Shown: one piece after another, positions 1 to 57,804 of the stretch
Layout of the letters: each line of letters begins with the position of its first letter
Position numbering within the stretch: position 1 is the first letter of the stretch
Assembly (NCBI GenBank): GCA_029953675.1
Contig: JAMWBK010000002.1
Span: forward strand, 1-64,000
From: Rhodosorus marinus CCMP1338
Taxonomy: Eukaryota; Plantae; Rhodophyta
Direction of reading: 5' to 3'
Length of the DNA stretch: 64,000 nucleotides
Program-made: the position numbers and the translations under genes
The notes under the pieces: generated by a model
The model's input: only the letters and a program-made list of their open reading frames with translations
Told to the model about the DNA's origin: nothing
Database searches by the model: none

Positions 1-72
1 CCGTCGCGTCCTCCATAAGGCGAAAAATCGCCGCCTCTCTCAAGCAGCACAGCACATCCCTTTCGACCCCGC

Positions 73-990: not shown

Positions 991-1609
991 TTAGCGTGCA
1001 CCACCAATGAAACCGCACCGAGAGAATAATCGACCACACCCAACCCAAATAGGAAAGGCCCCGCAACACACCCACCCGGAAGACAGAAGTAGTTGCAAAT
1101 GCAAACGACGCACCGCGGAAAATCGAGGGGGAAGGCGTACCAGAGGAAGCGCTTCCCGTAAACGAACACGCTCGCGACCGAAAAAGAAACAAAACCCCGA
1201 AACCATTCGTTCGATCCTCCTCTCCAGCTTTAGCCTCCCAAAGGTCTATAATGAGGCTTCACTAGGCGCTATATCGGTGAAAAGGGGTGAGATAGGGCAT
1301 ATATGGCTTAGAATGGGGGCATATTTCAGGTGTCTATTCGCTACTAGATTGGGACCCCTTCAGTACTGGTGGATCCATAGTGAAAGGCCTGAGCGGGCTC
1401 AGAGGGTGGCTGGTGAGATTGTATTTGCTGGGTCCTTCTTGTTTACTACCGAGGCTCAGATAAAGCTCAGGGAGCTTGGAATCCCCCCACGATGGGTTCT
1501 AATGTGCGTCTACGGCCACATACGTGAGCCTCAGGGGCATGTCAGGTTGCGGCTGGTGATGATTGATTGGATTTGCGATACAGACCCTTTAGATCCATGC
1601 TGAGGACCG

Positions 1610-2640
1610 TTCTGGGGCTCCAAGGAAGTCAGAGTGGCCTCTGAGGTTGGCTGGTTGAGTTTGATTGAGCTTTGGAAATGGAGCAATGGAGGGATCCAAG
1701 AAAGGGGCCAAGGAGGCTCCGATTTGGGGCTCCAGATGAGTCATTTCAGGTGGCTGGAAAGTGCTTTGAAAAGGGGTCGAAGGAGGTTCAAAATGAGGGC
1801 TCAGATGGGGCTCCAAAGGGGTCAAAATGGGGGCCAAAAGAGGGCTAATTTGGGTCCCAGGAGGCCCTTCAAATGGTGGCTATTGATTGGTAGCAGATGA
1901 TGGTTTTGGGGGCCTTGTTTCCTGCTGTGGCGCATGAATGCCGCTTTGATGTTGGAGGCGCGAGTACTTCGCCGCGCTTAGTCTTTTTTTCTCCTCGGGG
2001 TTTTTTTTTTCAGCCTTCGATTAAACCATTCGTTCGCTCGTTCGTTCCAGGTTTCTGTCGATCAGGGGTCAATTTCCGGACATTTTTGCAAGTTTAGCAC
2101 TGAACAGCCTTTTCACGTTCACGACTAAAACGTTGGGACCTGTGTAGGTACCGAACGAATGGTTTAAAAAGGTACCGGGGCAAATCGCAATTTAGTACTG
2201 TACAGCCCTTTTTTTTGTACACGGGGTTTCTCAACGGTTTTTCGAGGTCCAAGGGGTCAAAATGGGGTCCAAAATGGCTTCGAGATTGGGTGGCTGGTGA
2301 GTGGTTTTTGAAGGTCTATTTTGAGGGCTCAGAGGGGTCCTTTTTGGGGGTCCTCAGGGGTCCGATTTGGCGCTCCAAAGGGGTCTCAAAGAAGGCTCCA
2401 AGGAGGCTCCAAGAAGGGGCTCAGATCGAGATCTCAGAGGTCGCAGGAGACCGTTCGAGGCTCCAGATTTTCGAAGGAGGGGGCGGGGCTGAATGGGGTG
2501 GCTGGTTGTGAGCTTTCGTTGACGCTCTTTGGATCGAAAGGGGCAAAATGAGGGGATGTGGCTAGGTAAATATTGCTTCGCAGGGTTCACTACTGATTCA
2601 GATTTGTTCACTACTAAAGTCTTCAGAAGAGGGCACATTT
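1610..2640. repeat. Degenerate G-rich low-complexity repeats (GGGGCTCCAA / GGGGTCAAAATGGGG-like)
   Basis: Many strand-biased GGGG runs at 1610-1900 and 2240-2560. No clear fixed period. Confidence 0.5.
1918..2047 (+). mobile_element. 3' end fragment of family B non-LTR element (TTCG-tailed)
   Basis: Near-identical to 26795-26913: ...ARVLRRA* followed by T8-CCCCTCGGGG-T9-CAGCCTCCGATTAAACCATTCGTTCG. Confidence 0.85.
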
Positions 2641-2835
2641 ATTGCGAAAACAAGCGGGTTTACCCGGTACCTACACGGCTTTTTCAACGACTTTTATGTC
2701 TATGCTGAGCAACGTTCACTACTAAAGTTGACCAATCAGCGCCATATTGGGCGAAAAGGGGGCGAAGAGGAGGGCTGGTTTAGGGCTAGATATACCTAGC
2801 ACTACATGTAGGGTATATAAAATGCTACCCATTCT

Positions 2836-3563
2836 ATGAGTCAGGGTCAGGGGGGTCATCACTGCCCAACATCAACTGGACTGTGGCAACGTAGGCACGA
2901 CGAAATCTGCAGAGAGCTGGCACGGTGGCTGACGAACGAATGGTTTAATCGGAGGCTGAAAAAAAAAACCCCGAGGGGGTTAAGGCGATGGAACTTCATG
3001 GACGTAGAGCAAGAACCTGAGGGGTACTTCGAGAACTACGGACTGCGACCTGATGTCGTTGCTAGGCATCCGAGGACCAAACAAAGGTATGCGCTGGATG
3101 TGACGGTGGTGTCACCATTACAGGGAAAATATTTGCGTCGGAGCCCAGATGATAGCGGATACGCGGCGAGAGCTGCGGAGAAGTGGAAAATCGCTCACTA
3201 CAAAGAAGCGATGGTGATGGAGAAACCGGATGATAAGTTCATCCCGATAGCAATAGAGACGTTTGGGCGTACGGGGCAAATGGCACAGGAGTTCCTCCGG
3301 GACAGCTGCAAGCACTTACTGCACAGGAGTGAGGAGCTGAGAGACGTGAGATCGCAGATAAACCGGCAACTATGGCGAGGTAACGCAGAGATAGCATTAG
3401 GCGCTTTGCGCGTGGACCAGTTGGAGAATCCGCTGGTGCCTGTTTTTTCTTTTGAACGTAGCATGAGACCCCGGTAGCGGGGTTCCAGTAAGTTTCTCCC
3501 TAGATAGGATTAGACATAGTGTTGCGCTGCAGTAGGCAGCTGCCCACTAAAGCTTACGGTTAC
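2836..3563 (+). mobile_element. 5'-truncated family A element (RLE domain + 3' UTR) with a 51-nt antisense family B tail insert
   Basis: HHCPTSTGLWQRRHDE (CCHC end), LRPDVVARHP...YALDVTV (PD-D/ExK), ends MRPR*. The 3' UTR ends AGCTTACGGTTAC. Insert at 2933-2983. Confidence 0.9.
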
Positions 3564-3580
3564 GTTAGTCTGGGGTTACG
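3558..3580 (+). repeat. Telomere-like 16-mer junction tract (GGTTACGTTAGTCTGGGGTTACG)
   Basis: Lies between the 3' end of one family A copy and a 5'-truncated next copy. Confidence 0.75.
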
Positions 3581-3624
3581 CATCAACTGCTCAAAAGAAC
3601 TTCAATCAGTGACAGGACGTCTGA

Positions 3625-4665
3625 ATGAGCTCGCCAAAAAACCGCATATGTGGCAAGACGGACGAGCCACTACGACCCCGCCTCAACCCCCCGCAGCAGC
3701 ACCCGCGGACGGCCGCGGTCAATCAACATGCGGCAGAACCCATCATCAATCAACTTGCGGAGGGGACAGGTGTCCTTGCCTCACTGGACTATGCCACGGC
3801 CTTCCCTGTTGCCGGTACCAGCAGCACACGGCCAACGTACGCTCAGAGGACTGTCCAAAGTACTCCAGCTCGAGAATCAGAGGCTCAACTCCGACCAGCC
3901 GGGCGCCCGGGCCCACAGAGCCAGCAGGCAGCGCTGCGACAGTTGCACGCCACTGTGGGAGGGTCCTCCTGGGGACCTGAGACCAAGCCGGTACTGGCGA
4001 CCCTGAGGAATGTAAGACCGCCACGGTTGGACGAGGTAGCCCCATCGGATTTCACTACGGTTCTTTGCAGAGCCTTGGGGATTCCGAGCTCTTATGTAGC
4101 GCACGTGGACTTCATCGCTTCCCACGCGTGCTTACTCTCACATCCGGACGCGATTCCGATTCTACAAAGCGCCATCTCTCGGGGCGTTTTCAGGACGGGC
4201 ATCTTCGGTTCGTTCACCCAGAGACACCCCGATCGGCAAGTGACTCTCTACACGGGCCAGGCACTGGACACAGACAACCTGTTGGGCTATAATGAACGTC
4301 AGCTCATTGCCCCAGCGAATATCGGGGCTCAGACCCTGAAACGGGCGATTGAACAGACTATCCGGATCCGCGCGCGGCTTCGCAAAAGGCAACTCTCGTT
4401 CAACACACTCGCAGCGATACACGAGTACCTGGAGAGCAGGCTCGGAACCCTACAAGCCACACAACGTACTCAAACGGTACCCGGGGAGAGCGCGGAACCC
4501 CCAGCGCCTGCCGCCGCCACGAGCGCAGACCCTGAAGCCTCGTCCCTCACAGGAGACGCACAGGCAGCCCGTGGGACAGTCGACGCTCCGGGTAATCCCT
4601 TAGAGACTTCCCAAGTACCTGAAGAACCAGCTGCCGAGGATAACCCTCACGCAGAGCTCCTCTGA
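3625..4665 (+). pseudogene. Family A ORF1 (gag-like), 5'-truncated and frameshifted
   Basis: Near-identical to 20844-22082 at the start. A 1-nt deletion near 4663 (CTCTGAACC vs CTCTGCAACC) creates an early stop. Confidence 0.8.
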
Positions 4666-4846
4666 ACCTCCCCGAGCCTCCTCAACACAAGCGGTCGCGA
4701 GTAACCACTGATGGCACAGGCCAGGATACCGAGATGATTCTCGCAGCCCCAGAAGCACCTCAGCGAGATACACATGCCCAGACCCACTCCGCAGCCCACG
4801 ATAATGCGATGGACATCCAGACCAGTCAGGAAGACACAACCCAATA

Positions 4847-6862
4847 ATGCCGAGCCGACATAGGGGAATCAAACGCAGACGGGAAGAACCTCTTTTCTTC
4901 TCCAAGCGACAGGACTGGATTGAACGCTGGAATGTTTTCGTTAACGATATCACGGACAGAGGAAGGTTGTGGACTCGCCTCGCACACTGCCCCGTCCCTA
5001 CTCGACGCTTCGTACCTCGCGCACACGTCAACGACTGGAGCAGACTCCTTCGGGTCGCCCTGGAGCTGACAATGGACCGCGGCGCACCAGTGAATGCTAG
5101 CCTCTTCCTCTCCGGGCTCCCAGGATTGGTTCTCGGGTACACTGCTCTTCCAATCGGCACGCAGTTCACGCACGTACTCGAAGGCGAGTTTCACACGGTC
5201 TGGACTGCGCTCGAGGAATATGCCTCCAACCAGACCCTTCGTACTGCCCTAAGCGGACCTGAAATAGACCAGAAACAGGCGCAAAGGCGGCGAAAACAGG
5301 CCCTGAAATTGGCACATCTCGGACGCCTCTCACACGCGGCCCGCAGACTGCAGGCCACCGAACTGGCTCCATTTACCAACGCTACGTGGCAACAACTGGA
5401 GGAACTCTTTCCGGACCAGACGGAGTGCTCCCTACCGGTGGATGTCGATCAAGCCCTACAAAACCTGCTCTCCAAGGACACCGATAATCTCCGGAGAAGA
5501 TGGAATGCCCGACTAGCAGCAGACGAAGGTATCCTCGCGATAATAGCCCGGCTTCCCCAAGGTACTAGCCCCGGGCCTAGCGGACTCCGAGCAGAACACC
5601 TGCAGGGAGCCACCCAGAACGTCCAAGTGGCTCTAGTCCGCGTTCTCCGGCAACTTGCTACGGCACCAGAGAAGTTTCCACCCCAGATGACCCGGGCAAT
5701 GCGTAGCAGCAGACTACTGCCGTTTGAAAAACCCACGAGCAACACAACCGTTGCAGCGAGACCTGGCATCCGGCCGATCGGAGTCCCCGAAGTCCTCCGA
5801 AAGGTGGCCACACAGTGGATCCTTCGTTCGGTCACCGACCGCGTTAAGGAACTGCTCATACCTCTACAACTGGGCATCGGAGTTAGCGGTGGTTGTGAAC
5901 GATCACTACACGCGATCCAGGCACAGCTCTCGTGCGAACCTGACGCCGTCGTCTTACGGCTCGACCTGGAGAACGCGTTCAACCGCATTGACCGCCGCAT
6001 CGCAAAGCAAATCCTGGACCACCATTTCCCCGAGCTGAAAGCCGTGTACCGGCTTGGCTACGGAAACGACAGCACGGAAGCTCCTACACTCTTCGGATGG
6101 CGTGATAACCACGATGCAGACCAAGACGACACCCACCGCTTGACACTTCGGGCCAGAACGGGAGTTCAACAGGGAGATCCCCTAGGACCGATCCTACATG
6201 CGCTCTCCCTGGCGCCTTTCTTGGAAGCATTGCACAACAAAGCACCTAATTTAACCATTGTGGCAATCCATGACGATATCACCATCGTAGGGCAGCTACC
6301 ACTACTGAAAGACGTACTACACTGGGGACAGGCACTACTACCCTCACTCGGAGCCCGACTGCAGCTTGCCAAGTGCACATTGTACGGCACCTCGATGACC
6401 ACGCCACGACTGGTCAGCCGCGAGATCCCTGGCGTCACGACGACGCGAGACGGAGTTACAATCCATTCCATTCCGATTGGAACTCGCGCTTACATCCAAA
6501 GCGAGTGCCGGCGGCTACAAAACAACCACGAGAAACTATTTAAGGAGATAGTGCACCTGCCCCCTGAAGAACTGACTACGAAACTGGCCCTCTTCCGTTA
6601 TTGTTCTGAACCCCGCCTGGACTACTTTCTACGCTGCCTCGCCTGCCCCTTTGGAAGAACACTTGCACGGGAAGCGGACGCCCTGACGCGTTATCACCTA
6701 GATACACTATTTGGAGGCCTCACTACTACGACCATCGAGGACCCTGACTACGAAAAATCTACGCTAGACCAGATAGCACTCCCCTGTCGCTGGGGAGGAC
6801 TGGGCTTTGCTACGAGACAGCGGATCCAGCCCATCGCCTTCTACTGGACTTTACTAGCATAG
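4847..6862 (+). pseudogene. Family A ORF2 reverse transcriptase, 3'-truncated by an antisense family F insertion
   Basis: SPGPSGLRAEHLQ, RPIGVPEVLRK, RLDLENAFNRIDR, TGVQQGDPLGP, VAIHDDITI, LPCRWGGLG. Homology stops at ~6847. Confidence 0.9.
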
Positions 6863-7790
6863 CCTGAAGCGCTACGCAAGGCGTGAAGATGAACTAATAA
6901 CTAGGGAGGCAAGCATGCAACCCCAGGCGCCGATGGCGCGCCTCGGAAAGCATGTCGCTGGAATATCGCCAAAGGGAGACACTTAAACGCCTCAAGAGCG
7001 CCAAATATTCAGTAGGATGCTCAGCAAAACATTTCCGCAACCACTCTAAACCCGACTTATCCACGTGACCAAAGCTTTCCACAATGAATGGCTGGAACCG
7101 GTGAGAGCGACCCTCAGCGCAAGGCAGACTGGCCATGCTCTCAGCATACCGTCGTTCCTTAACTCTTCGAAGGGCTGAAGCCGCGGCCCCCCGGCGGCGG
7201 GCGGCTGCGGTGAGGTGGGCGCTGGCCACGGGGCAGGTAATCGCAAGGTCCACATATGTTGAGCGTCTGGCAGCAGCGTCGGAGACGAGGAGATCGGCTA
7301 TACAACGGGGCGGTGCAGAGTCCGAGATGGATCTGGGCAGTTCCGACTCAACCTCAACCGTATGCCCTATCCGAGTCAAAGATTCGCTGAGGATGTACTT
7401 GAGGCGAGTGTGACGCCTCGTACGGAGACCTCGCAACAGTCCGCAGGAACCCAGGAAGTGGTAGCCACAAGCGTCAATCCGGCTCTCACATCCCTGACAG
7501 AAAGACGGCCGATTAGAGTGCCACGGAGCCTGTGGCAAACCGAGATAGATCCGTGCGGCAGAACGGAACTGGAAAGCATCGAGACGATGACTCAATGACG
7601 ACGGTAGAGTGGTTAACCACAAGTGCGAGAGGTGGCCTCCCATGCCGCGGAGACGAGCGGCAGTGGTAGGCGGCGTGAGAGGAGAATTGAGCATGACTGT
7701 GTGAGCGGCACTGTGTTGGCCCCAGGTGAGGCTATGTTGAATCACATCAGTGCGGGAGCTCCACAATCGGCTCAAACCCGGGTAGTCTGT
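6845..7790 (-). mobile_element. Family F non-LTR element 3' part (CCHC + RLE + 3' UTR)
   Basis: CQGCESRIDACGYHFLGSC...RRH, IADLLVSD...TYVDLAIT, ends ACLPSY*. Near-identical to 23236-24180 and 27882-28830. Confidence 0.9.
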
Positions 7791-9213: not shown

Positions 9214-12200
9214 CTAGCAAGATACTACCTTGATACTTGCTGGGCAGCTCTCGGAGACGACGGTAACTTTGGCCTCCCTCATATTTTCACTGAGGACGGC
9301 GGCTGAGAGGTTGAAGATTACAGATTTCTTGTTGGAGCTCACTGCAACGCCTTCCGGTCTCTTCCACTGCGTCCTCTTCGGCTTATCGGACCAATCCCAA
9401 TCCATCTTCATCATCTTTGGCAGATAAACTCCATCGTTTGCTCCGATGGTGATCTCGCACGCGCTGACTTGACCTACTGAGGATTCTGACACAACTCTTT
9501 TTACAGAAGAGCTGTACGAAGCGCAAGCAGTCGATCCTATTTCACTCAACATGGTTTCAGCGGGCACGAAAGCAGATTTTTCCCTGAATTCCTCGAACAG
9601 GGCGGAAGCGCTCGTTCCCTCTTCGTCCGGAGCTGAGGTTGGCGTCGCTTCGACTGACGGCATCGGCGAGGGAGTCGAGGTTGGCGTCGCTTCGTATACC
9701 GGAGTCGGCGAGGGAGTGCTCGTTTCTTCCGGCGAGAACGAGTTGCACATGATCGGTATTTTATCGTCAAGAGGGTCGGCAAAGTTTGACCTCACATAGC
9801 TTCCGGTGAAATAGAGCCGAATATTTGCGATACCTTCGATGTCTATCAACCTCGTATCCAGCCGGTAGTTGCTGAACGGGCTGATATCGAGGTAATTTTC
9901 TTCAGAAAATATGGCGTGCTGTCGAATGAAGTTCGACGCCATCCAATCAGCCAAACTCTGCTCCTCATCATCCGGGGCGCTGCCGTAGTACATAAAAGTA
10001 CGTCGCCTGTTGGTGTGCGAGAACTTCCTCACGTTATACATCGATTCTTCGTCGTCTCCCTCAGCGACCCGCACAATACCGGAGCTGGCCATGTGGGTGA
10101 TATCCAAAACGGGCTCGGCGCTATCGCTGACGCCGTCGAACACGGCATATATACTGTCCAAAGAGATCAGCGGGAAGAAGAGGGGAGATACCAGCCCAGG
10201 TAGGCTATTGAACGCCTTATTTGATGGATCTATGCAGAAGTTCATCGATCCTGTTTTCACGAATTCCGCCCAGTTTTCTTCTCCGATCGTCTCGGCGTTA
10301 AGCTCCACGGGGCCCCAGTAGGCGCCGTATTCCATCAACTGGTGGAGCTCGTAGGTGTTCTCATACCAATTTTTCAACGACTGCCGAAGCTTAAGAATCG
10401 ACTCTGAGGCGCACTGAAAGTACAAGCTCTTGGAGATGTCCAGTAAGGACGCCTCCCACTCGCAGTCGGCGAGGGTGATCGTGTTCAGCCCGGTAGTGGA
10501 AAGTCCCATCATTAGGTACTCCCTCGAGGTAAAAACCAACTCGAGATCCCTGTGGAAGTCGTCTACGAGTGAGTTGTAGTTGCTTTCGTGGGCGATCTTG
10601 ACCGCCGGGGCAGCGGGATTGATCATGTTGTTCTTGATCTCTATGTTCAGAGCGTCAACGACGTTCATAAGGTAGAGCTTCCTCGCCGTAACCTGCTTTA
10701 GGTAAGCCATGTAGCTCGTGTAAAGCGCGATCAGATCATTCTTCTGCTCAACCCACATGTCTGCCGTATCGAAAGCCCTGAGAAAACCGCTTGCCGACGA
10801 GTAGCAGTCTTTCTTCATGAAGCTGACGTAGTCCATTAGCTCCTTCCTATCCATTGCCACCATCGCCGAGCTCATGTTGTCCTGCATCGAGTTCAACTGC
10901 GCAGCGATTGCCATAGCCGCTTCGTAGTCATCGGCCTCGTAAAGACTGTCGAGTGGATCTGCTAGGGTATCGGAAGCTAGATTTCCAATGTCTTCCATGA
11001 TTGCGTCCACGCTTGGAGTGTACGCGGACCAGTCCGCTGAATCTCCCGCGGAAGGAAAGAAGCTGTGGATCTCCTTAGTAAGGTCGGTTATCGCCTTAAA
11101 CTTAAACCCGCTGAAGCCGTCGATACCCTTGAACGCGGTTTTTGCCGCATCGGACTTCGAATTGCTCGACCAGCCCCCAGCCTTTGACAGCACTCGTGTC
11201 ACCGAGAATCCCAGGTCGAAGACGCTCATAGCGAAGCTCGTAAACTCCATTACCGTCTCGAACACCATCTGAGCTTTCACCTTCTCCCAGCACTCGTCCA
11301 TAGCGACCTGCTGCTGGTCCATCTCCCAGTAGTATTGCCTAATGTTCTCCTCTGCGGTGAGGATAGAGCGATTTACCTCCTGCATCTGCACCAGGAGCTC
11401 CTCCTGCTTCGACCGCTGAGCCAAGATGCCGTTCTGTGCGTTGCTAGTCGCGTTGGTGAGCATCTCCATTGAGGCCGCAGCGTCATCAATTGAGTCTCTG
11501 AAAATGTCGTAGTAGATCTCCAGCTCGGCTCCGAGTTCACGTCTGTCCTCAAGGTAGTCCAGAAGATACTCGAAGCTCATCACGCTGACCTCGTTCACGG
11601 GCCTCGTCGTCGAGGTTGTGAGCTGGTTCGCAGCCTGGATGATCGAGATAGCCTGGCCAGCGAGGGAGGTATACTTTTCCCTGACGGTGTCATCGGCAGT
11701 CTGGTTGGCAGCACGCTGCGCATTATAGAGCATATCCGACGTTGAGGCCATGATCATCGCGTAGGCGTTTTGGTTTTGGTCGATGTTGTCATTGAAGAAC
11801 ATGACCCTCAACATTTTCTTCGAAAGGCTGAGACCGAAGTCAATGTAGGCAGGTGGCTGTATGTAGTCTACGTACGCATACTCCTGGGGTTGCTCAAAGT
11901 CGTTGTCATCCCAATCCTCCACTTCAGCGCCAACCACCCCCCGGAATGACTTCTCAAGTGGCAAATGGGAGATCGACCCTCCGCCTCCCCAGCCACCGGA
12001 CCACCCTTGGTCGCCTTGCGGAGGATATCGGAAATCAAATGACTCATAGTAGTTGACGTTCAGGATGATGTTCTTGGTCCATGTTCGAACCCCGCATCTG
12101 TTGGTAAGCGTGCCCCCGCTTCCCCCGTCACCTCCACGCCCACCGGTCCCCCCCGAGCCTGAGATCGATTGGCCAATAAAGAGCGCGCTGGCATCTTCAC

Positions 12201-13137
12201 TAGTTAACTCAACGTTCTCGCCACCCACAACAACATTTGAGTAGATCTTCACCTCTCCAGCCTTTCCACCGTCTCCTCCGGTACCACCCGTGCCTCCGGG
12301 CCCTCCCTGCTGCGGCGCGCCGGGGTTGTAGTACTGACAAATCTTTTTATCGCCATTCCATGCTGCATCAGTCGGACACTGATTACACCACCAGGCTGAG
12401 CACCGGCTTGCTACCCAGTCGTCCTTAAGCCCACAGGGCATACCGTCCACGCCCTGCTGAGCGTTGCCACCCTGTCCACCTATTCCTCCCGTTCCACCTT
12501 CACCTCCATTTGTCGTCACAGTCATTTTGAAGCCGCCCGAGTACAAGCTCGCAACATCCAGGCTCTTGGCGATAAGTGTGAAGTTCCCACCGCTCCTGCC
12601 CTGGTGCCCTTTGTAACCCGTGAAGCCCCATTTGCCCATGTCGCCATTCGGACTATCGGTGTGTGATTGTTGCTTCGGAGGACCTGGCACATCCGGCTGT
12701 TCCGGAGCCTCAGGAGGAAGGGAGGTGAGTTCATTTGCTGTGAGGTTCACTTCGAAGTCTCCATCCGTCTTTATCTCCACGACGCTCCCGATGATCGAGA
12801 GGTTCGTCCCCTGCATCTTCGCAACCGCCCCCGCGGCTCCTTTGATAAGAATGTAGTATCCGTATACAACGACATCTTGATCCGACCCGAAAAGCTTCGT
12901 CGAAGACGTCTCGTCCTCCGAAAAATCGATGACGTAGAAAAACGGTGCGTACACGTTGAAAACACCTCCTTCCTCACCATCGGCGTAGCCAGATGCCACA
13001 TCTTGTGCCATCAAGCATGCCGTACTCGACAATCCCCAGCCTTCACAAACTTCGGAGTCCTCTGCATTTACTGGGCAACTGAAAAGCAGCCCAAAAAGGA
13101 TGCACAGTCCCCATAACACGACTGTTTTAATGTTCAT
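9214..13137 (-). CDS. Large secreted Gly-rich/helical protein, putative Tc(TcA)-like toxin-fold protein, paralogue 1
   Basis: Intact 1307-aa intronless ORF. Signal peptide MNIKTVVLWGLCILFGLLFSCPVNA, GxxG/GGxGG runs with a Cys-rich insert, a long helical region, a C-terminal beta region with YLDISPFSNYRL, a PT/S linker and a terminal domain. Collinear homologue at 53968-57804. The function call is inference. Confidence 0.85.
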   Translation of the reverse strand: MNIKTVVLWGLCILFGLLFSCPVNAEDSEVCEGWGLSSTACLMAQDVASGYADGEEGGVFNVYAPFFYVIDFSEDETSSTKLFGSDQDVVVYGYYILIKGAAGAVAKMQGTNLSIIGSVVEIKTDGDFEVNLTANELTSLPPEAPEQPDVPGPPKQQSHTDSPNGDMGKWGFTGYKGHQGRSGGNFTLIAKSLDVASLYSGGFKMTVTTNGGEGGTGGIGGQGGNAQQGVDGMPCGLKDDWVASRCSAWWCNQCPTDAAWNGDKKICQYYNPGAPQQGGPGGTGGTGGDGGKAGEVKIYSNVVVGGENVELTSEDASALFIGQSISGSGGTGGRGGDGGSGGTLTNRCGVRTWTKNIILNVNYYESFDFRYPPQGDQGWSGGWGGGGSISHLPLEKSFRGVVGAEVEDWDDNDFEQPQEYAYVDYIQPPAYIDFGLSLSKKMLRVMFFNDNIDQNQNAYAMIMASTSDMLYNAQRAANQTADDTVREKYTSLAGQAISIIQAANQLTTSTTRPVNEVSVMSFEYLLDYLEDRRELGAELEIYYDIFRDSIDDAAASMEMLTNATSNAQNGILAQRSKQEELLVQMQEVNRSILTAEENIRQYYWEMDQQQVAMDECWEKVKAQMVFETVMEFTSFAMSVFDLGFSVTRVLSKAGGWSSNSKSDAAKTAFKGIDGFSGFKFKAITDLTKEIHSFFPSAGDSADWSAYTPSVDAIMEDIGNLASDTLADPLDSLYEADDYEAAMAIAAQLNSMQDNMSSAMVAMDRKELMDYVSFMKKDCYSSASGFLRAFDTADMWVEQKNDLIALYTSYMAYLKQVTARKLYLMNVVDALNIEIKNNMINPAAPAVKIAHESNYNSLVDDFHRDLELVFTSREYLMMGLSTTGLNTITLADCEWEASLLDISKSLYFQCASESILKLRQSLKNWYENTYELHQLMEYGAYWGPVELNAETIGEENWAEFVKTGSMNFCIDPSNKAFNSLPGLVSPLFFPLISLDSIYAVFDGVSDSAEPVLDITHMASSGIVRVAEGDDEESMYNVRKFSHTNRRRTFMYYGSAPDDEEQSLADWMASNFIRQHAIFSEENYLDISPFSNYRLDTRLIDIEGIANIRLYFTGSYVRSNFADPLDDKIPIMCNSFSPEETSTPSPTPVYEATPTSTPSPMPSVEATPTSAPDEEGTSASALFEEFREKSAFVPAETMLSEIGSTACASYSSSVKRVVSESSVGQVSACEITIGANDGVYLPKMMKMDWDWSDKPKRTQWKRPEGVAVSSNKKSVIFNLSAAVLSENMREAKVTVVSESCPASIKVVSC

Positions 13138-15474: not shown

Positions 15475-15835
15475 TTTACTGGGCAGCTGCCTACTGCAGC
15501 GCAACACTACGTCTAATCCTATCTAGGGAAAAACTTGCTGGAACCCCGCTACCGGGGTCTCATGCTACGTTCAAAAGAAAAAACAGGCACCAGCGGATTC
15601 TCCAGCTGGTCCACGCGCAAAGCGCCTAATGCTATCTCTGCGTTACCTCGCCATAGTTGCCGGTTTATCTGCGATCTCACGTCTCTCAGCTCCTCACTCC
15701 TGTGCAGTAGGTACTTGCAGCTGTCGCGGAACTCTTGTGCCATTTGCCCCGTACGCCCAAACGTCTCTATCGCTATCGGGATGAACTTATCATCCGGTTT
15801 CTCGATCACCATCGCTTCTTTGTAGTGAGCGATTT
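15475..15835 (-). mobile_element. Family A 3' fragment inserted antisense into a family B copy
   Basis: ...ERSMRPR* plus 3' UTR on the minus strand. B sequence resumes at 15836, with ACCC duplicated (15470-15473 and 15836-15839). Confidence 0.8.
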
Positions 15836-16021
15836 ACCCCTGATAATTGAGTGCTTTGGGTTCATGGACTCTGTTGGTTCTCGCTGGCTTCGGGAGTTGT
15901 TCCGTGAACGCCCTGACCGTCTTCAATCGTTGTTTACCCGCTTAAGGTTCTTCGCCGCACTTCCCGTCTTTTTTTCCCCTCGAGGTTTTCTCTTTCAGCC
16001 TCCGATTAAACCATTCGTTCG
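15836..16021 (+). mobile_element. Family B 3' fragment
   Basis: LIIECFGFMDSVG... followed by the CAGCCTCCGATTAAACCATTCGTTCG tail. Confidence 0.8.
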
Positions 16022-16950: not shown

Positions 16951-19900
16951 GGCACGAGCGCGACGGGCCGATGGCCATGGGGAAAAACGTCGCAATGCGC
17001 AAGTAATTCGGTTGGCCACCGTTGGCCGACTTTCTGCAGCCGCCCAGAGACTTGAGGCAACGGATCTCGCCCCTCTGAAACCATCCACCTGGCAGGCTCT
17101 CCGGGAGCTTTTCCCCGCTGAGCCAACAACACCGCTACACGAGGAAGTGGAATTGGAGCTCCGACGTATCCGCGAACAAGGCAACACACACCCTCCACGA
17201 GTGTGGAACCCCGCAGCAGCGAGCGAACAGTCCCTTTTCTCTGTGATCAACCGACTTCCAGCCAAAACGAGCCCCGGACCCAGCGGACTGAGAGCAGAGC
17301 ATCTCCACGCCGTTACACCTGCGAATAAGCCCAGATTGGTTAAATTTCTGCGACTCCTAGCAGGGAAACCTGAGTCGTTCCCGTCCATACTTCGTCAGGC
17401 CCTTCGTAGCAACCGGTTGCTTCCGTTTATCAAACCACAAGCAGAAGGAGTGGCGGCTGAGGGACGCTTCCGACTGAGACCGATTGCCGTTCCAGAGGTT
17501 TTGCGCAAGGTCGTTGCGCAGTGGGTAGTAGGAGGAATCTCTGGTCGGCTAAGCGAGTTCCTAGTTCCGCAACAGCTGGGGATTGCCGTTCGGAGCGGAT
17601 GCGAACAAGCGTTACACGCAGTACAGGCCCACCTCTATTACGAACCACAACACGCCTTGCTAAAACTGGACCTGGAGAATGCATTCAATAGGATTGACAG
17701 ACGACTGGCGGCTCAAGTTGCGGCGGCTTCATTTCCAGAGTTACTCCTTATCTTCCAGCTCGCTTACGGCTCATGTGCGAATGAGTCTCCAATGCAGTGC
17801 GGATGGACAGAAATGGCCGAAAGCGCTGGGAGAGTCAAAGACAGGCTGTATCTGAGAGCAAGCACTGGCGTTCAACAAGGAGACCCCGTGGGACCCGTAC
17901 TTCACGCGCTCGCACTGGCCCCGTTCCTTCGGGCCCTGCGACGCAAGTTCCCAGAACTGACGCTGGCGGCAGTACACGACGACATTTCTCTGGTGCGTGA
18001 TTTACAGGTGCTTAAAAGTGCTTTAAATTGGAGTGAAGAGGCACTCATCGGGATAGGAGCGAAGCTACAGCGATCCAAATGCCTCATCTACGCACCGAGA
18101 CTGGACACACCACGTAGGATAAATGTGGATATTCCGGACATTCAGGTCACGCGTGAGGGGACTACCCTGTACTCTATTCCCATTGGAAGGCGCCAATACG
18201 CGGAGGCAACATGCAGGACTATCCAAACACGTCATGCAAAGCTCGTGAACGCACTTCAACGTCTCCCAGAGTCGGAATTGCACGTTAAGTTAGCGATTTT
18301 CCGATACTGTGCGGGAACACGCCTTGATCACCATACCAGAGGCCTGGCGTATCCACTGGGCCGGACCACCGCCAGGGAAGCCGACGGCATCACCCTTGCA
18401 GAACTGGAAGGGTTATGTGGAGGACTGAGACACCATCAAGACATAAGCGGAGTTGAGACACACGTGGTGGAGCAGCAGATTCGACTGCCATGTCGATGGG
18501 GAGGGCTAGGGTTTGCTATGCGGACGAGGATTCAACCGGTCGGTTTTCACGCTGGGTGGAAGCAGAGTCTTCAGCAGAATATCACTCAGTCAGGTTACCT
18601 TAGGGGGCTACTTTTGGACTGTATTTCGCTTGCGGATGGACATCAGCGGTGTGAGATCAGTATGCAGTGGACCACGGACGATCTGGCGGTGCAACTTGTA
18701 GCGGCAAGCCATGCGGTACAGAGGAGGCTATCACCATCGACGAGTGCACGGATCAAGAGGCTAGCGGAATGGCAACCATTAGCAGACTGTGCAAGAGGAA
18801 CTGAGACGGATCCGAGGAGTTCCGGAGGATATGACGGTCCCATTCAAAAAACGCTCTGTCGAGAGTGCCACCGTCACGCCTTCGAGATACTCACGGAGTG
18901 TGCAACGGTGGAGGACGTAGACAGGGCAAGAATCCGGTCGGCGGCAGGGACGGGTTGTGGTGTATGGCTCAGAGACTGCCCTAACGTGGGTCCGCGGAAA
19001 TTAAGTCGGGATGAGATGATCTCGAGCATGAGGATGCTTCTGGGGCTACCCCTACCTGGACTCGGCCGGTCATACAGTTGCACAGTCTGCGAGCAACCAC
19101 ACGATGTGCGTGGGATCCAGCGGCTGCACCACTGCAGGACGTCATCGGGGATACATTAGTCTGGGATGCAACGGTGGAGGACGTAGACAGGGCAAGAATC
19201 CGGTCGGCGGCAGGGACGGGTTGTGTTGTATGGCTAAGAGACTGCCCTAACGTGGGTCCGCGGAAATTAAGTCGGGATGAGATGATCTCGAGCATGAGGA
19301 TGCTTCTGGGGCTACCCCTACCTGGACTCGGCCGGTCATACAGTTGCACAGTCTGCGAGCAACCACACGATGTGCGTTGAATCCAGCGGCTGCACCACTG
19401 CAGGACGTCATCGGGGATGCGCACAAAGAGGCACGACGAGCTGAAAGTCGAACTGAGTCGCTGGCTACACCTATGGAATTTCACAGAGATAGTAGTAGAG
19501 CCTCAGGGGTTCTTTGCTGGGTCCGGAATCCGACCCGATATTGTAGCACGGCACCCGACGAGTGGTTGCGTGTACGTGGTGGACGTGATGGTAACATCGC
19601 CACTTCAAAGGAATCAGTTGAGGCATACGAGTTGGAGCTGCGGATACGCTGCGAAACAAGCAGAACAAGCGAAGGCGTTGCATTGTAAGGAAGTGCTGAG
19701 GGTGGAAAACCGAGACCTAGTTTTTGTGCCGTTCATTTTGGAGACTTTTGGTCGAATGGGAGAGGCAAGCCTGGAATTTCTTCGCAAAGGGACGGCGCAT
19801 CTGCATGATCGTGATTCCCACCTGTCGGCGGTGAGAGGTCAAATCAATCGGATCCTGTGGCAGCAAAATGCTGCTTTAGTTGAACATGCGATGGAGAAAG

Positions 19901-20056: not shown

Positions 20057-20356
20057 TGGGCGTACGGGGCAAATGGCACAGGAGTTCCTCCGGGACAACT
20101 GCAAGCACTTGCTGCACAGGAGTGAGGAGCTGAGAGACGTGAGATCCCAGATAAACCGGCAACTATGGCGAGGTAACGCAGAGATAGCATTAGGCGCTTT
20201 GCGCGTAGACCAGTTGGAGAATCCGCTGGTGCCTGTTTTTACTTTTGAACGTAGCATGAGACCCCGGTAGCGGGGTTCCAGTAAGTTCCTCCCTAGATAG
20301 GATTAGACGTAGTGTTGCGCTGCAGTAGGCAGCGGCCCAGTAAAGCTTACGGTTAC
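20057..20356 (+). mobile_element. Short family A 3' fragment
   Basis: MAQEFLRD...MRPR* plus full 3' UTR, flanked by motif tracts at 20035-20056 and 20351-20370. Confidence 0.88.
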
Positions 20357-20370
20357 GTTATTCTGGGGTT

Positions 20371-22950: not shown

Positions 22951-22959
22951 GTTAGTCTG

Positions 22960-27860: not shown

Positions 27861-27881
27861 TAATCGTGCTTCTCCCCCTCA

Positions 27882-36895: not shown

Positions 36896-37203
36896 GGACT
36901 AGCGTAACACCAGACTTATATCACCGCCGCTTAATCCTCTGGCAGTCAACCTTGCAAGTTGTGGAATCGATACACTAGAGTTATATCGCCGCCGCTTCAT
37001 ACTGTGCCATCCACGTATCCTGGTCGTCGGACCGTGATTGATGTCCAACTCGACCAAGAAAAAGCCGTTTCGTACAGAAAATACGGAATAGATAGCGACT
37101 TGGTCAAGCCGCTTGATATTGACTGAACTTGCAATCCTTACAATTCTCGCTAGATTGAATGAATTTGCTAGATTTGGGCAAGGCAGGAGCGTACCCACAA
37201 ATC

Positions 37204-39634: not shown

Positions 39635-39639
39635 GCAGG

Positions 39640-53967: not shown

Positions 53968-56900
53968 ATGTTACGTTTGAAGATGTTGCAGGCTGCTGTC
54001 TGCTGTGCGACGGTGTTGTGGGTTTCGATGCACCCTGGGGTCGTGGGGGGGGTTGTGACAAACCCGTCTTCAACTGATGCCTGCGACGGTTGGGGACTGT
54101 CTAGTGAGATCTGCGCTATGGCAGTAGACATTAAGTATTCGGTGGTCACTACGGATTCGCAGAGCACTGTGAAAATCTATGCACCGTACTTCTACATCCT
54201 CGACTTCACAAAGAATGACACTGATACCACAATGTTTATGGGAACTAACACGACGGTGCATATCTACGGATTCTACGTTCTGATAAAGGGAAAGGCTGGA
54301 GTGAGCGCGAACATTCGAGGTTCCAATCTAATCATTTTGGCCTCAATCATCGACGTCCAGACGGACGGATCGTTCTCTCTGGATATGAGAGGGCCTCCAC
54401 GTGAAGTCGACCCTCCCTTGGTTCCACATAAAATCCCACCTCCCCCGCCTAGAGAACGTTTCCTGGGACAACAGGGAATTAATGGTACACAAGGGGCTCC
54501 CGGATTGCCTGGAACGGAGGGCTGGCCCGGTGGGACAGTTGTCTTCGTATCAAAGCAACTCAACCTGACCTCGTTGCACCAGGGGGGGCACAAAATGCTG
54601 TTCCTCGACGACGGAAGCCCTGGGACACCGGGTGGAAAAGGGGGTCCAGGACAGCAAGGAGGACAGGGATCTGACGGAATCAGCTGCAGTTTCCACAGGA
54701 CTGCTAGTGGTTCATCGAACGACAGGAATTGCTGCTACGAATGTGACCCTATGGACATTCATCCTTTTAACGGCTATAAAAGATGTCGAAGCTACCAGGC
54801 CGGTAAGGCGGGATCTGGAGGCCCAGGAGGTCCTGGTGGACCAGGTGGCGATGGTGGACCTCCTGGATGGCTATCTGTGTATGCAAATTCAGCGGGTGAA
54901 GCGGGAGGCAAGCCGATAAGCAACGAGGAAGCGTTGAAAATACTCGAATCGTCGTCGAACTATGGACAAGGGGGTTCAGGAGGACTTGGCGGTGACGGTG
55001 GAGGTGGTGGTGTAAATAAACCGGACGCGCTCTGCACGACGTATAAGAAAGACAATTTTTTTTGGGTTGAATATAAAGGCGACAAGGCCGTCAAGCCCGT
55101 TGGTGTGCAAGGCTCCCAAGGTTCTCAAGGGGCCAAGGGAAAAGATAGCGGCTGGACCAGACCGACGTTCATACGAGCGACGACAAACGCTACAGGGCAC
55201 CCATCAGATCTGAACAAATTCGAAAACCCGCAGCAATGGGCCGACTTCGACCCTGAGCCAGCGGAGTACCTTCAATTCGGACTCGAACTTTCGGAGAACA
55301 TGCTCAATTCGCTGGCCTTCATGGACGACGATGAGGCGGCTCAGAACGCGTACAGCATAATCCTTCAATCTGTGAGCGATATAATGTACAATGCCCAGCT
55401 GTGGGCCAATCGGGCCAATCCGGAGGATAAGAAGGTGTTCTCCTCCTACGTGAACAAGGCCAGAACATTGATCAAGAGCATCAACAGGGTGAGCACACCT
55501 AGCGGATCATCTCTCGGCGAAGTGTCAGTGAAGAGCTTCGAGTCACAGCTCGATGATTTGGACAGCTTTCGAGTACTCGCCCAGGAGGTGGAAGGTTACT
55601 ATGATGAATACGCGAAGAATGTAAACGATACCAAGACGTCTGAAAAGATTCTCGCAGAATCCACTAAGAGCTCTCTGGTAGGAGTTCAGGCTCAGACGAG
55701 ACTGCAGAATGAGCTCCTCACAGCGCTACAACAGATGAATAAGACGTTGGATGAGGTTGCTCTGAATATTCATCTGGTCCAGATGAAGCTCGGAGATAGT
55801 GAGTTCGAGTTGGATGCGTGCTGGGAGAAAGCTCAAGCGATCCTCAAGTTCAAGACCATGATGGAGTTCGTCTCTTTCTTCACTAGCGTGGCTGACTTTG
55901 GATTTGGAGCGACCAAGCTGCTCGGGAAGGCCTCCGATGTGCTGTCCAAAGATGAAGGCTGGTTCAAAGGAATCGAGGCTGCATCGGGGTACAAGTTCGC
56001 CTATATTCCGGGAATGATCAACAACCTTGAAAAGCTTATACCTGGAACAGGACAAAGCGCAAACTGGGCACCGTACGAGTCGAGCATGAAGCTCATCAGT
56101 GGAGATCAGAGTTCTCTGGACGGTTACACCGGGGATCTACAGAACGTGCTGGCGGGAATATACCGCGCAAAAGACTATGATGATGCTCAGGGAGTTTACG
56201 AAAAGATGAAGAAGGCGCAGGATGACTACAAGAATGCAAAAATCAACATGGCCAAGTCTGAGATTACCAACAAGGTTAACGGCATGAAATCTGCGTGCCC
56301 CGGGCAGGCGCAAAACTTTTTCCGCAACTTCGACACGCTCCAGATGTGGGTCAACCAACGTAACGACCTGCTTGCTGTATACACGGCAATTAAGGTATAC
56401 TTTGACCGAGTCACCGCGAAGAAGCTTTACTTGAGGAATGTTGCGCAGAGGCTTCTGACCCAGCTTCAACAGAACATCGTCAACCCTGCATCGATCGCCG
56501 TGGCTACCGTGCACCAAGAAACATACAACATGATGGTTGACGAGTTCTCGAAGAAGCTCGGTCTCGTCCTCAACGCACGGAGCTACCTCATGATGGGAGC
56601 GGATAAAGATACGTTGCCCAAGTTGGCCTTTGCAAACTGCCGGTGGGAGACATCGATTCTCAAGAACTCGGGTAACATGTTCTTCAAGTGCTCAGCGGAC
56701 GCTATTTTGCAGCTGAAGAATTCACTGTCTCATTGGCACACGAGCGTTTACACTGAAAAGCAATTGGCGCACTGGTTGTCATACTGGGGCCCAATAGAGT
56801 TGAACGAGAAGACCGTGGGTGCTGGTCGATGGCAGGATTTCAAGACGACTGGCATCATCAACTTCTGTATGGATCCCACTGAACCGATCTTTAACCGGGG

Positions 56901-57804
56901 ACCAGGCGATAATAGCGAACAGTTCTTCCCGCTGATCAGCATAGACAGTATTTACGTCGTTCTAGATGGGGCACCAGAGAACTCAGGCAAACGAGTTGAT
57001 ATTATACATCAGGCCACTTCTGGGATAGTTCGAGCGATGGAGAACCCAGACTACAAGACCGGAAAGGACTCAATGCACCCCTACAGCACGAAGAAGTTTA
57101 CGCACGCGGACCGCAACCTACGGTTCATCTACAAAGGCGCAGCTCCTCCAGATGAGCACGAGAAGGTCAAGAGCTGGATGCATTCTACGAACATCGCGCT
57201 GAAGGCAGATCTCGGCAGCGCAAATACGTACCTGAGGGTAAGTCCCTTCAGCAACTACAGGGTTGCGGCAGATATAAGCCTACTCGAGCAGGTGGACAAC
57301 GTTCGAGTGTACTTCACGGGATACTACGTACCAGCCGCGGACTTTCACATAGCGCCGATCTCTAGTCTCCCCGATCCCGTCTTTTGCTCCTCGACCATTG
57401 GAAAGTCAACATCTACCACTCATCCATCAAGCAAAAACTTGTCCGTTGAGGAAGCAAAGGGATTGAAGTGTTCGTCATACTCCGTATCAGCGGAGCGCCT
57501 GGACGATTACGTCAAGAAGGATGGGACCCGGACCAAGGCATGCAAAATTAGCATCAAGTACCCTACCGAAAACCAACCGAAGCTTCCAGAGAAGATCCGA
57601 GTCGAGTGGGAGTGGGCTGAATATCACGACGACATCGATGGCGAGCATAGCAACGGAATTACGATGGCCATCAACGCCTCCAAAGCCATATTGAGTATCA
57701 AGCATACATACGGTAAACCGCCGCCCACGGAAACGGTTTTGCTGACGAAAACGTGTCCCTCCAAACTTCGAGTAGCTAGCACCTACCCTGACGACTGCCA
57801 ATAA
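53968..57804 (+). CDS. Large secreted Gly-rich/helical protein, putative Tc(TcA)-like toxin-fold protein, paralogue 2
   Basis: Intact ORF (first ATG 53968; the ORF track starts at TTG 53959). Hydrophobic N-terminus and the same domain order as 9214-13137, with shared blocks CDGWGLSS, YAPYFYILDF, CWEKA, DTLQMWV, YLMMG, YWGPIELN, FFPLISIDSIY, YLRVSPFSNYR. Confidence 0.85.
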   Translation: MLRLKMLQAAVCCATVLWVSMHPGVVGGVVTNPSSTDACDGWGLSSEICAMAVDIKYSVVTTDSQSTVKIYAPYFYILDFTKNDTDTTMFMGTNTTVHIYGFYVLIKGKAGVSANIRGSNLIILASIIDVQTDGSFSLDMRGPPREVDPPLVPHKIPPPPPRERFLGQQGINGTQGAPGLPGTEGWPGGTVVFVSKQLNLTSLHQGGHKMLFLDDGSPGTPGGKGGPGQQGGQGSDGISCSFHRTASGSSNDRNCCYECDPMDIHPFNGYKRCRSYQAGKAGSGGPGGPGGPGGDGGPPGWLSVYANSAGEAGGKPISNEEALKILESSSNYGQGGSGGLGGDGGGGGVNKPDALCTTYKKDNFFWVEYKGDKAVKPVGVQGSQGSQGAKGKDSGWTRPTFIRATTNATGHPSDLNKFENPQQWADFDPEPAEYLQFGLELSENMLNSLAFMDDDEAAQNAYSIILQSVSDIMYNAQLWANRANPEDKKVFSSYVNKARTLIKSINRVSTPSGSSLGEVSVKSFESQLDDLDSFRVLAQEVEGYYDEYAKNVNDTKTSEKILAESTKSSLVGVQAQTRLQNELLTALQQMNKTLDEVALNIHLVQMKLGDSEFELDACWEKAQAILKFKTMMEFVSFFTSVADFGFGATKLLGKASDVLSKDEGWFKGIEAASGYKFAYIPGMINNLEKLIPGTGQSANWAPYESSMKLISGDQSSLDGYTGDLQNVLAGIYRAKDYDDAQGVYEKMKKAQDDYKNAKINMAKSEITNKVNGMKSACPGQAQNFFRNFDTLQMWVNQRNDLLAVYTAIKVYFDRVTAKKLYLRNVAQRLLTQLQQNIVNPASIAVATVHQETYNMMVDEFSKKLGLVLNARSYLMMGADKDTLPKLAFANCRWETSILKNSGNMFFKCSADAILQLKNSLSHWHTSVYTEKQLAHWLSYWGPIELNEKTVGAGRWQDFKTTGIINFCMDPTEPIFNRGPGDNSEQFFPLISIDSIYVVLDGAPENSGKRVDIIHQATSGIVRAMENPDYKTGKDSMHPYSTKKFTHADRNLRFIYKGAAPPDEHEKVKSWMHSTNIALKADLGSANTYLRVSPFSNYRVAADISLLEQVDNVRVYFTGYYVPAADFHIAPISSLPDPVFCSSTIGKSTSTTHPSSKNLSVEEAKGLKCSSYSVSAERLDDYVKKDGTRTKACKISIKYPTENQPKLPEKIRVEWEWAEYHDDIDGEHSNGITMAINASKAILSIKHTYGKPPPTETVLLTKTCPSKLRVASTYPDDCQ

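Follow-up and report, generated by a model that had tools for sequence, protein, structure and literature searches.

Can a reading frame that stays open for 3.9 kb among decayed retroelements of a red algal genome encode a functional protein, and is this protein related to the TcA subunits of Tc toxins? The window analysed here, comprising the first 64,000 nucleotides of contig JAMWBK010000002.1 of Rhodosorus marinus CCMP1338, raises this question twice. Its first long gene, named pA, was read as a stop-free and intronless ORF of 1307 codons, the probability of which, as calculated from base composition, is about 7e-25; it lies on the minus strand, which the initial annotation had not stated. 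The second gene, pB, had escaped that annotation altogether; it aligns collinearly with pA from end to end, at 34% identity. The remaining long ORFs of the window either derive from transposons or gave no match. Transposon families held in common with Rhodosorus, at 96-98% identity, assign the window to this genus or to a very close relative of it. The surroundings are as decayed as had been described: 10-11 fragments of RVT_1-type reverse transcriptases from several families reach at most 87% coverage of a reference ORF of 963 aa, several of them being split over two or three frames, with 0-2 internal stops each, and are accompanied by one copia-type and one Ty3-type remnant.

In such a setting, pA could be a transposable-element gene, i.e., an env-like or accessory gene of a surrounding retroelement, and it does lie between retroelement fragments, one of which has its end about 130 bp past the stop codon of pA. 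However, the stretches at 7.8-15.0 kb and 52.7-58.2 kb, harboring pA and pB, are the only sizeable ones of the window without repetition at the DNA level, and while the surrounding elements are 84-99% identical, the two genes have diverged to the 34% given above. Two further intact paralogues were identified in the R. marinus CCMP1338 genome, at the loci L001 and L002; the flanks of the four copies share nothing consistent, and the L001 copy resides in a non-repetitive context. As the islands with the gene are unique within the window and the flanks vary from copy to copy, with no fixed position inside a repeated element, we rejected a retroelement-borne gene and regard this origin as extremely improbable.

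The four Rhodosorus paralogues, sharing 34-80% identity, are under purifying selection. For pB and the L001 copy, the sole pair with unsaturated synonymous sites, a dN/dS of 0.27 was obtained at a dS of 0.42, and older pairs displayed values of 0.15-0.20. Cysteine positions are conserved across the copies, and each of the four proteins opens with a comparable hydrophobic leader. A complete transcript ORF of 1264 aa, belonging to the L002-type paralogue, is present in MMETSP; for pA itself, no transcript is on record. Taken as a whole, these features are consistent with pA being a nuclear gene that is functional in a red alga of the Rhodosorus type.

The layout of pA is given in Table 1; every feature listed in the initial annotation, from the signal peptide to the Cys-flanked end, could be located. 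The signal peptide represents the most hydrophobic 19-residue window of the protein (Kyte-Doolittle value of 2.21) and ends in a small-residue cleavage motif, in agreement with the secretion that had been proposed. Downstream of it, a Kyte-Doolittle scan revealed no segment of transmembrane-grade hydrophobicity, and since pA lacks a hydrophobic tail, it has no membrane or GPI anchor. The Rhodosorus paralogues have kept the beta-rich domain that comes next, and a protein of the jakobid Andalucia godoyi, described below, shows partial conservation of it. In the Gly-rich region, GGxGG runs flank a loop with five cysteines (C235-C267) on either side, and an alignment showed glycines that are invariant in all five family members. 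This region also carries six to seven collagen-like G-X-Y triplets in a row (residues 165-184); as the run comprises no more than these and no Pfam Collagen match was obtained, a collagen-like protein was rejected.

Table 1. Positions in the window of pA, its predicted domains and its paralogue pB.
Feature	Position	Strand	Basis
pA, whole gene: intact intronless ORF, 1307 aa plus stop	9214..13137	-	ORF scan; stop statistics
Signal peptide, residues 1-25	13063..13137	-	Sequence reading; hydropathy
Beta-rich domain at the N-terminus, residues 26-137, with the conserved Cys pair C31/C41	12727..13062	-	AF2 strands, pLDDT 57-81
Pro-rich linker, residues 138-163	12649..12726	-	Sequence
Gly-rich region, residues 164-395, 25% Gly	11953..12648	-	Sequence; AF2 pLDDT partly 65-82
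Helical region, residues 396-875, predicted all-alpha, one helix of ~70-100 residues	10513..11952	-	DSSP, both AF2 models, pLDDT 30-45
Conserved hydrophobic Gly-containing segment, residues 621-650, candidate membrane-active tip	11188..11277	-	Hydropathy, alignment, AF2 model
C-terminal alpha/beta region, residues 876-1122, 3 conserved Cys	9772..10512	-	Alignments; strands in both models
Pro/Thr/Ser-rich linker, residues 1123-1195	9553..9771	-	Sequence
C-terminal domain, 4 Cys, residues 1196-1307	9217..9552	-	Sequence; paralogue model
pB, paralogue: intact ORF, 1278 aa from first ATG	53968..57804	+	Sequence comparison

An all-helical stretch of about 460 residues (about 417-875) was predicted for the helical region, which shows conserved Cys, Trp and Pro positions and is not a low-complexity coiled coil. 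The hydrophobic stretch noticed before is present at residues 626-646, but with a Kyte-Doolittle value of about 1.2 it stays below transmembrane level. According to a local model of low confidence, the segment that includes it (residues 621-650) is placed where the longest predicted helix ends, with a Gly/Ser-rich loop after it; this segment is 33-50% identical among the paralogues and has a hydrophobic counterpart in Andalucia. The alpha/beta region, in which the previously quoted SPF and IRLYFTG motifs lie at residues 1086-1093 and 1106-1112, is the best-conserved part, with 43-45% identity among the paralogues and 23% to Andalucia. The Pro/Thr/Ser-rich linker, long in pA and short or absent in the paralogues, is probably O-glycosylated, and the terminal domain was predicted in a paralogue to be an eight-stranded all-beta sandwich.

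How widely this arrangement occurs was addressed by an exhaustive HMM search of 1.84 billion representative proteins, which recovered only the Rhodosorus copies and one protein of Andalucia godoyi (E-values of 0, 3e-194 and, for Andalucia, 1e-14), bearing out the suggestion of an undescribed eukaryotic family. In the Andalucia protein, ANDGO_06449, the whole module is collinear at about 20% identity, with retention of several cysteines, of the C-terminal alpha/beta region and of the glycines that do not vary in the family. Unlike pA, this protein continues after the module with several FN3 domains, beyond which come a transmembrane segment and a cytoplasmic tail that is short and basic; it is therefore membrane-anchored and not secreted. 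Its gene model displays no visible signal peptide.

A further, probable relative was met in a fold search of viral structures with the pA model, in which A0A481Z1I0 matched over the full length (E 1.3e-22, probability 1.00, 1183 aligned columns); collagen-like and C1q-domain proteins were returned as well. A0A481Z1I0 is an uncharacterised protein of 1032 aa from LCMiAC02, a Mimiviridae bin of the Loki's Castle sediment metagenome (PMC6401483). It differs from the other members in belonging to a viral genome bin, in sharing just 14% identity with pA and in not being recovered by the HMM search, and on the basis of the modelled fold it is probably a true member. Full-length alignments, together with this full-length fold match, confirmed a collinear module of about 1100 residues, running from the beta domain through the Gly/Cys-rich region and the helical region with its hydrophobic loop to the alpha/beta domain with conserved cysteines. 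We describe a new family of extracellular proteins, including Rhodosorus pA-pD, Andalucia ANDGO_06449 and, probably, A0A481Z1I0 of LCMiAC02. No additional relatives were seen: word-indexed protein searches with the whole of pA, with its residues 400-1125 and with residues 400-1140 of the Andalucia protein returned nothing besides the query, pattern scans of viral contigs, metagenome contigs and bacterial or archaeal genomes were empty, and pA, pB and the Andalucia protein, looked up by exact sequence in public assemblies, gave no match. The sole PHROGs match was a low-complexity one to the PT linker, and nothing relevant was found in the literature on the Andalucia locus tag, on DUF7932 or on Tc-like proteins of giant viruses.

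The match to A0A481Z1I0, the extremely patchy distribution, limited to a single red-algal genus, one jakobid and a viral bin, and the location of the genes amid mobile elements in the window would fit an origin or spread via giant viruses. In that case, Rhodosorus and Andalucia would long ago have acquired a gene for a surface or entry protein of the nucleocytoviricota, or a virus would have taken up the gene of a protist. However, no viral hallmark genes were found beside pA, pB or the two other R. marinus loci, so that an endogenous giant-virus island around the genes was rejected, and the GC content of the genes matches that of their surroundings. Since the paralogues are saturated at synonymous sites and under purifying selection, residence in the alga is old. 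Moreover, A0A481Z1I0 could stem from a mis-binned eukaryotic contig of the metagenome, and no relative was retrieved from the viral contig collection. Involvement of giant viruses, compatible with either functional reading discussed below, thus appears unlikely to us.

With regard to function, the initial annotation had proposed a likeness to TcA. At the sequence level, this likeness could not be recovered by any method. No Tc family was found in Pfam at E<=1 with the whole proteins or at E<=10 with pieces and with all five family members, pA had no match in NCBIfam, and when all PDB sequences were searched at E<=10, by phmmer and with two profiles, no TcA chain was retrieved; the PDB sequence matches were Gly/Pro linker alignments only. 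At the fold level, the picture was different. AlphaFold monomer models of pA and of a 34%-identical paralogue (mean pLDDT 45-46, pTM 0.29-0.38), which are not fully independent because both were built on one alignment of five sequences, were compared with the PDB, and with both models TcA subunits came out on top over 740-860 aligned columns, including YenA2, TcdA1, XptA1/2, TcaA-TcaB and TcdA4. TcA chains made up 20 of the 28 top matches in the first search (best E 6.2e-4) and all 22 in the second (best E 1.3e-4, probability 0.96), where the next family followed at E 0.14. In both searches, TcA was about 1000-fold ahead, by E-value, of every other helical family, including dynein, SMC/Rad50-type coiled coils and ALIX. 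The best matches were chains of YenA2, which belongs to YenTcA, a TcA of the split (type II) kind, and the helical region of pA forms part of the TcA-aligned stretch. With a pLDDT of about 45 and TM-scores to TcA of just 0.09-0.18, the match is a lead, not a proof; the TcA-like reading is hence partly supported, at the level of the modelled fold only. The other pore-formers that had been considered fared worse: ClyA/YaxAB/Hbl-type toxins share a long helical body and a hydrophobic segment with pA, but YaxAB appeared in only one fold search at E 0.54 and rank 44, there were no sequence matches, and Vip3 was absent from the fold searches, so that both types were rejected.

By modelled fold, the nearest known proteins are the TcA subunits, which assemble as pentamers, of Yersinia entomophaga (YenA2), Photorhabdus (TcdA1/TcdA4), Xenorhabdus (XptA1/XptA2) and Y. 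pseudotuberculosis (TcaA-TcaB). In these, an alpha-pore-forming domain precedes the TcB-binding domain, and the hydrophobic tip of the channel is formed by loops at the ends of antiparallel helices (PMC11435725). The predicted order of elements in pA, in which long helices lead to a hydrophobic loop at the end of one of them and further helices precede a beta-rich C-terminal domain, resembles this layout, and both kinds of protein are extracellular. In comparison with TcA, however, pA is half as long and shows neither detectable sequence similarity nor a Tc Pfam signature. The alpha-helical shell with its Ig-like receptor-binding domains and the neuraminidase-like domain were not detected in its 1307 residues; its N-terminal 400 residues are instead beta/Gly/Cys-rich (26-395), a region not known from TcA. 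In addition, pA possesses a eukaryotic signal peptide, conserved disulfide cysteines and, after the supposed TcB-binding-like domain, a PT linker and a beta-sandwich. No TcB/TcC-like gene, i.e., no RHS/YD-repeat cocoon, was seen beside pA in the window or in the L001 and L002 loci. Lacking the TcA shell, the receptor-binding and neuraminidase-like domains and a TcB/TcC partner in view, pA is not classifiable as a TcA. A eukaryotic precedent for Tc components is the Tc complex of the fungus Metarhizium, whose A subunit has 2882 aa and the standard TcA InterPro signatures, with TcB/TcC-like partners identified on other chromosomes (PMC13236867); unlike this complex, pA reveals neither such signatures nor that size nor, in the window and at L001 and L002, partners.

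Our tentative preference, which we hold with somewhat less than even confidence, is that pA encodes a secreted protein of a new family, the rear two-thirds of whose module would correspond, in very divergent form, to the C-terminal half of TcA, comprising the alpha-pore-forming helices and the capping beta-rich domain. The product would be a disulfide-bonded and probably glycosylated extracellular protein, oligomerising via its long helices, with the conserved hydrophobic loops gathered at one end, where they might bind to a foreign membrane or enter it. Rhodosorus would release the module into its wall or the medium; on the surface of the Andalucia cell, the FN3 stalk would keep it attached. 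The protein may act in defence or when other cells are contacted.

This evidence can also be read in another way, as that of a structural or adhesive glycoprotein of the extracellular matrix or cell surface, in which the Gly-rich, collagen-like head and the long helices would mediate oligomerisation and spacing and the glycosylated PT linker would form a hinge, the TcA matches being an artefact of low-confidence long-helix models compared with the largest helical proteins of the PDB. The signal peptide, conserved cysteines, PT linker, G-X-Y triplets and C-terminal beta-sandwich would all be at home in such a protein, as would the adhesion-receptor layout of the Andalucia homologue (head module, FN3, transmembrane segment, short tail), the collagen-like and C1q-domain proteins among the viral fold matches and the lack of transmembrane-grade hydrophobicity past the signal peptide; the low model confidence and the TM-scores not exceeding 0.18 point the same way. 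On the other hand, an artefact of this kind is difficult to reconcile with the lead of TcA over other helical families in both searches and with a helical region that is not low-complexity, and no adhesion, collagen or lectin domain of Pfam was detected in the Rhodosorus proteins. We consider such a glycoprotein a real possibility.

Going beyond the preferred TcA-channel counterpart, it is conceivable, if rather doubtful, that the module is truly related to the TcA translocation channel, though extremely diverged from it, and that this single-chain, shell-less protein occurs in eukaryotes (secreted in the red alga, FN3-anchored in the jakobid) and in a giant virus, having been moved by virus-host gene exchange. 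If so, a eukaryotic relative of the TcA channel would parallel the teneurins, which are the counterpart for the Tc B/C cocoon. With the fold link being true, the Tc channel would not be confined to bacteria and a few fungi with acquired whole Tc loci, but would exist in a stripped-down form in deep-branching protists and giant viruses, providing a new entry point to the evolution of Tc toxins and to the means by which membranes are breached or sensed by algae, by heterotrophic flagellates and by the viruses of both. With the fold link being false, there remains a conserved extracellular module of 1100 residues without known relatives, which a red alga and a jakobid have in common with a Mimiviridae bin; such a distribution points either to transfer by viruses or to an ancient inheritance followed by massive loss.

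Two minor observations concern existing annotations of the family: the public gene models of its R. marinus members are truncated, and the name 'Twitchin' given to ANDGO_06449 reflects its FN3 repeats only.

The gene under study, pA, occupies window 9214-13137 on the minus strand and consists of 1307 codons without interruption, a stop-free run with a chance probability of about 7e-25 as estimated from base composition, in agreement with the intact frame described in the initial annotation. All features listed there were recovered, namely the signal peptide, the beta domain, the glycine runs round a cysteine loop, the helices, the hydrophobic stretch, the quoted motifs, the PT linker and the Cys-bearing terminal domain (see table; domain limits are good to about 10 residues only). 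The stretch called "amphipathic or hydrophobic" is, given its hydropathy, amphipathic and below transmembrane grade. As pA carries no C-terminal hydrophobic tail, its predicted protein should be released rather than anchored.

Coordinates of pA domains, further family copies and the short repeat of the window
Feature	Location	Strand	Remarks
pA signal peptide	residues 1-25		
pA beta-rich domain	residues 26-137		
pA Pro-rich linker	between beta-rich domain and Gly-rich region		
pA Gly-rich region	residues 164-395		25% Gly; 6-7 G-X-Y triplets; GGxGG runs flanking five-Cys loop
pA helical stretch	residues ~417-875		predicted; ~460 residues
pA hydrophobic stretch	residues 626-646		hydropathy ~1.2
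pA alpha/beta region	residues 876-1122		holds both motifs quoted in the initial annotation
pA PT-rich linker	residues 1123-1195		
pA C-terminal domain	residues 1196-1307		four Cys
L001 copy	L001:9596-13408	+	intact intronless ORF, 1270 aa
L002 copy	L002:10001-13792	+	intact intronless ORF, 1263 aa
300-400-bp unit	window 3164-3563, 15475-15841, 20057-20370, 22661-22959, 36497-36896, 45043-45442, 49978-50185		

The pA family is a real, constrained gene family. Its second member in the window, pB (53968-57804, plus strand), is an intact full-length paralogue of 1278 aa with 34% identity, collinear with pA from the signal peptide through the last cysteine; the link between the two had not been made in the initial annotation. 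Two further intact intronless copies are present in the R. marinus CCMP1338 assembly GCA_029953675.1 (PMC10250338), one at each of the loci L001 and L002. The deposited models, KAJ8905592.1 (657 aa, L001) and KAJ8904482.1 (328 aa, L002), are shorter than these ORFs and cover just parts of them, so that public annotation truncates the family. None of the four Rhodosorus copies is disrupted, and their cysteine positions are conserved; between pB and the L001 copy, which share 80% identity, dN/dS is 0.27 (dS 0.42), and older paralogue pairs show a dN/dS of 0.15-0.20 at saturated dS. A complete 1264-aa transcript ORF of the L002 type, 92% identical to the genomic copy, is contained in MMETSP, while neither a pA transcript nor an exact product of pA or pB is on record.

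Among 1.84 billion representative proteins, searched exhaustively by HMMER with a profile of the pA/pB helical-plus-beta region, only three matched: an MMETSP transcript ORF and an NCBI gene model, both of Rhodosorus marinus, and one protein of the jakobid Andalucia godoyi. Neither word-indexed searches of 5.8 billion proteins nor pattern scans of contigs from viruses, metagenomes and prokaryotes found any relatives. Pfam gave no match for the complete proteins, for fragments (E<=10) or for any of the five members (the four Rhodosorus copies and the Andalucia protein), NCBIfam and PHROGs returned weak chance or low-complexity matches only, and in the PDB sequences as a whole, phmmer and two profile searches hit low-complexity linkers only. 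The proposal of an undescribed secreted eukaryotic family is supported. In the Andalucia protein ANDGO_06449 (2055 aa), the whole module of about 1100 residues aligned at about 20% identity, with the invariant glycines and several cysteines in common, and leads into FN3 domains, then a transmembrane segment and finally a short basic tail; judged by this domain order, the module is the putative distal head of a surface-anchored protein. The source name "Twitchin" is owed to the FN3 repeats alone, the N-terminal 1140 residues being the new module, and the gene model, which begins without a signal peptide, is probably truncated at its 5' end.

The initial annotation had also likened pA to TcA, the channel subunit of bacterial Tc toxins, a resemblance that the negative Pfam, NCBIfam and PDB searches do not support at the sequence level and that reappeared at the fold level. 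AlphaFold2 models of pA residues 25-1130 and pB residues 397-1278, built from the same five-sequence alignment, were poor (mean pLDDT 45.2 and 45.6, pTM 0.38 and 0.29, respectively), with pLDDT values of 65-80 reached only in the N-terminal beta/Gly region and in places within the beta domains, and values of 30-45 in the helical region. The order of secondary structures agrees between these low-confidence models: several helices lead to a helix of 70-100 residues ending in a conserved hydrophobic Gly-containing segment, after which come a loop of 30 residues, some shorter helices, a pair of helices of about 40 residues and an alpha/beta domain, and the pB model ends in an eight-stranded beta sandwich. 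In fold searches of the PDB, TcA subunits made up 20 of the 28 top matches of the pA model (best YenA2, E 6.2e-4, 753 columns) and all of the top 22 of the pB model (best YenA2, E 1.3e-4, probability 0.96; TcdA1, 3.6e-4; also XptA1/2, TcaA-TcaB and TcdA4), the first non-TcA protein there appearing at E 0.14. TM-scores to TcA were only 0.09-0.18, values that models with incorrect global packing would be expected to give. That the matches are an artefact of poor helical models, and the protein a structural or adhesive surface glycoprotein, is the main rival reading and a possible one.

TcA ends in antiparallel pore-forming helices with hydrophobic loops at the channel tip and then a C-terminal TcB-binding domain (PMC11435725), and the models predict, at low confidence, the same order of helices and hydrophobic segment before a C-terminal domain. 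In contrast, the TcA shell and the receptor-binding and neuraminidase-like domains are missing from pA, and TcA signatures and sequence similarity from its family, and no TcB/TcC-like partner gene was seen in the window or at L001 and L002; whereas a Metarhizium TcA is caught by standard signatures (PMC13236867), the Rhodosorus family was negative in every sequence-based test. Because the models share one alignment and the sequence tests were all negative, we consider the fold matches a repeatable lead, not proof, and do not claim membership in TcA proper. Our tentative preference is for a shell-less, highly diverged TcA-channel-like protein, whose long helices would oligomerise, and the oligomer would expose the conserved hydrophobic loops.

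Fold search of BFVD, a set of predicted viral structures, and this search only, gave a full-length match of the pA model to A0A481Z1I0, an uncharacterised protein of 1032 aa, over 1183 columns (E 1.3e-22, probability 1.00), every other match having an E of 2e-4 or worse. It belongs to LCMiAC02, a Mimiviridae bin that resembles klosneuviruses and stems from sediment at Loki's Castle (PMC6401483). Exchange with giant viruses, on which this match bears, seems an unlikely origin of the family and would fit a TcA-like protein and a surface glycoprotein alike. The known members of this new extracellular module come from a single red-algal genus, with at least four copies, from one jakobid and from one giant-virus bin.

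Outside pA and pB, the window consists of nested retroelement debris, sizeable unique DNA being limited to 7.8-15.0 kb and 52.7-58.2 kb; no tRNA genes were found in the window. RVT_1 matches occur in seven ORFs (two of them under the Pfam gathering score), besides a single gag/RT remnant of copia type and a single integrase remnant of Ty3 type. With a 963-aa RT ORF as reference, the census came to 10-11 RT fragments, which cover at most 87% of that ORF and of which several are split across two or three frames, with 0-2 internal stops each; this upholds the earlier view that the elements around pA are broken. Many repeat copies are 95-99% identical, and the transposon families share 96-98% identity with their counterparts at L002, which assigns the window to Rhodosorus or a very close relative. 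Amid such surroundings pA might be taken for a TE-borne gene, a highly improbable reading that we rejected: the pA and pB stretches are unique DNA, flanks differ from one family copy to the next and the DNA around the L001 copy is non-repetitive, and the family genes are therefore not part of transposons.

Window 1-5635 is 97.4% identical to L002:15378-21096 (contig JAMWBK010000005.1), a stretch beginning 1.6 kb downstream of the L002 paralogue, and represents either a shared transposon or synteny with a different strain, in which case three members of the family would lie in a cluster. The 300-400-bp unit occurs at least seven times, in both orientations and with 94-97% identity, and probably represents an LTR or else a short non-autonomous element. 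An RT-bearing segment is present in three 99%-identical copies (window 6843-7789, 23237-24424 and 27881-29071), one ending near the pA 3' end; this identity suggests that the element was active very recently or that gene conversion took place. The copia-type remnant (window 39518-44514, minus strand) is flanked on both sides by direct repeats, each about 0.9 kb long and with 92-99% identity, and carries Gag (zinc knuckle) with a Pol beta-barrel domain, and RT, on two overlapping ORFs in different frames; among its long ORFs, neither an integrase nor an RNase H match was found. Two local tandem duplications, at window 18901-19418 and 32643-33014, have units of about 250 bp and 185 bp, respectively, with 97-98% identity.
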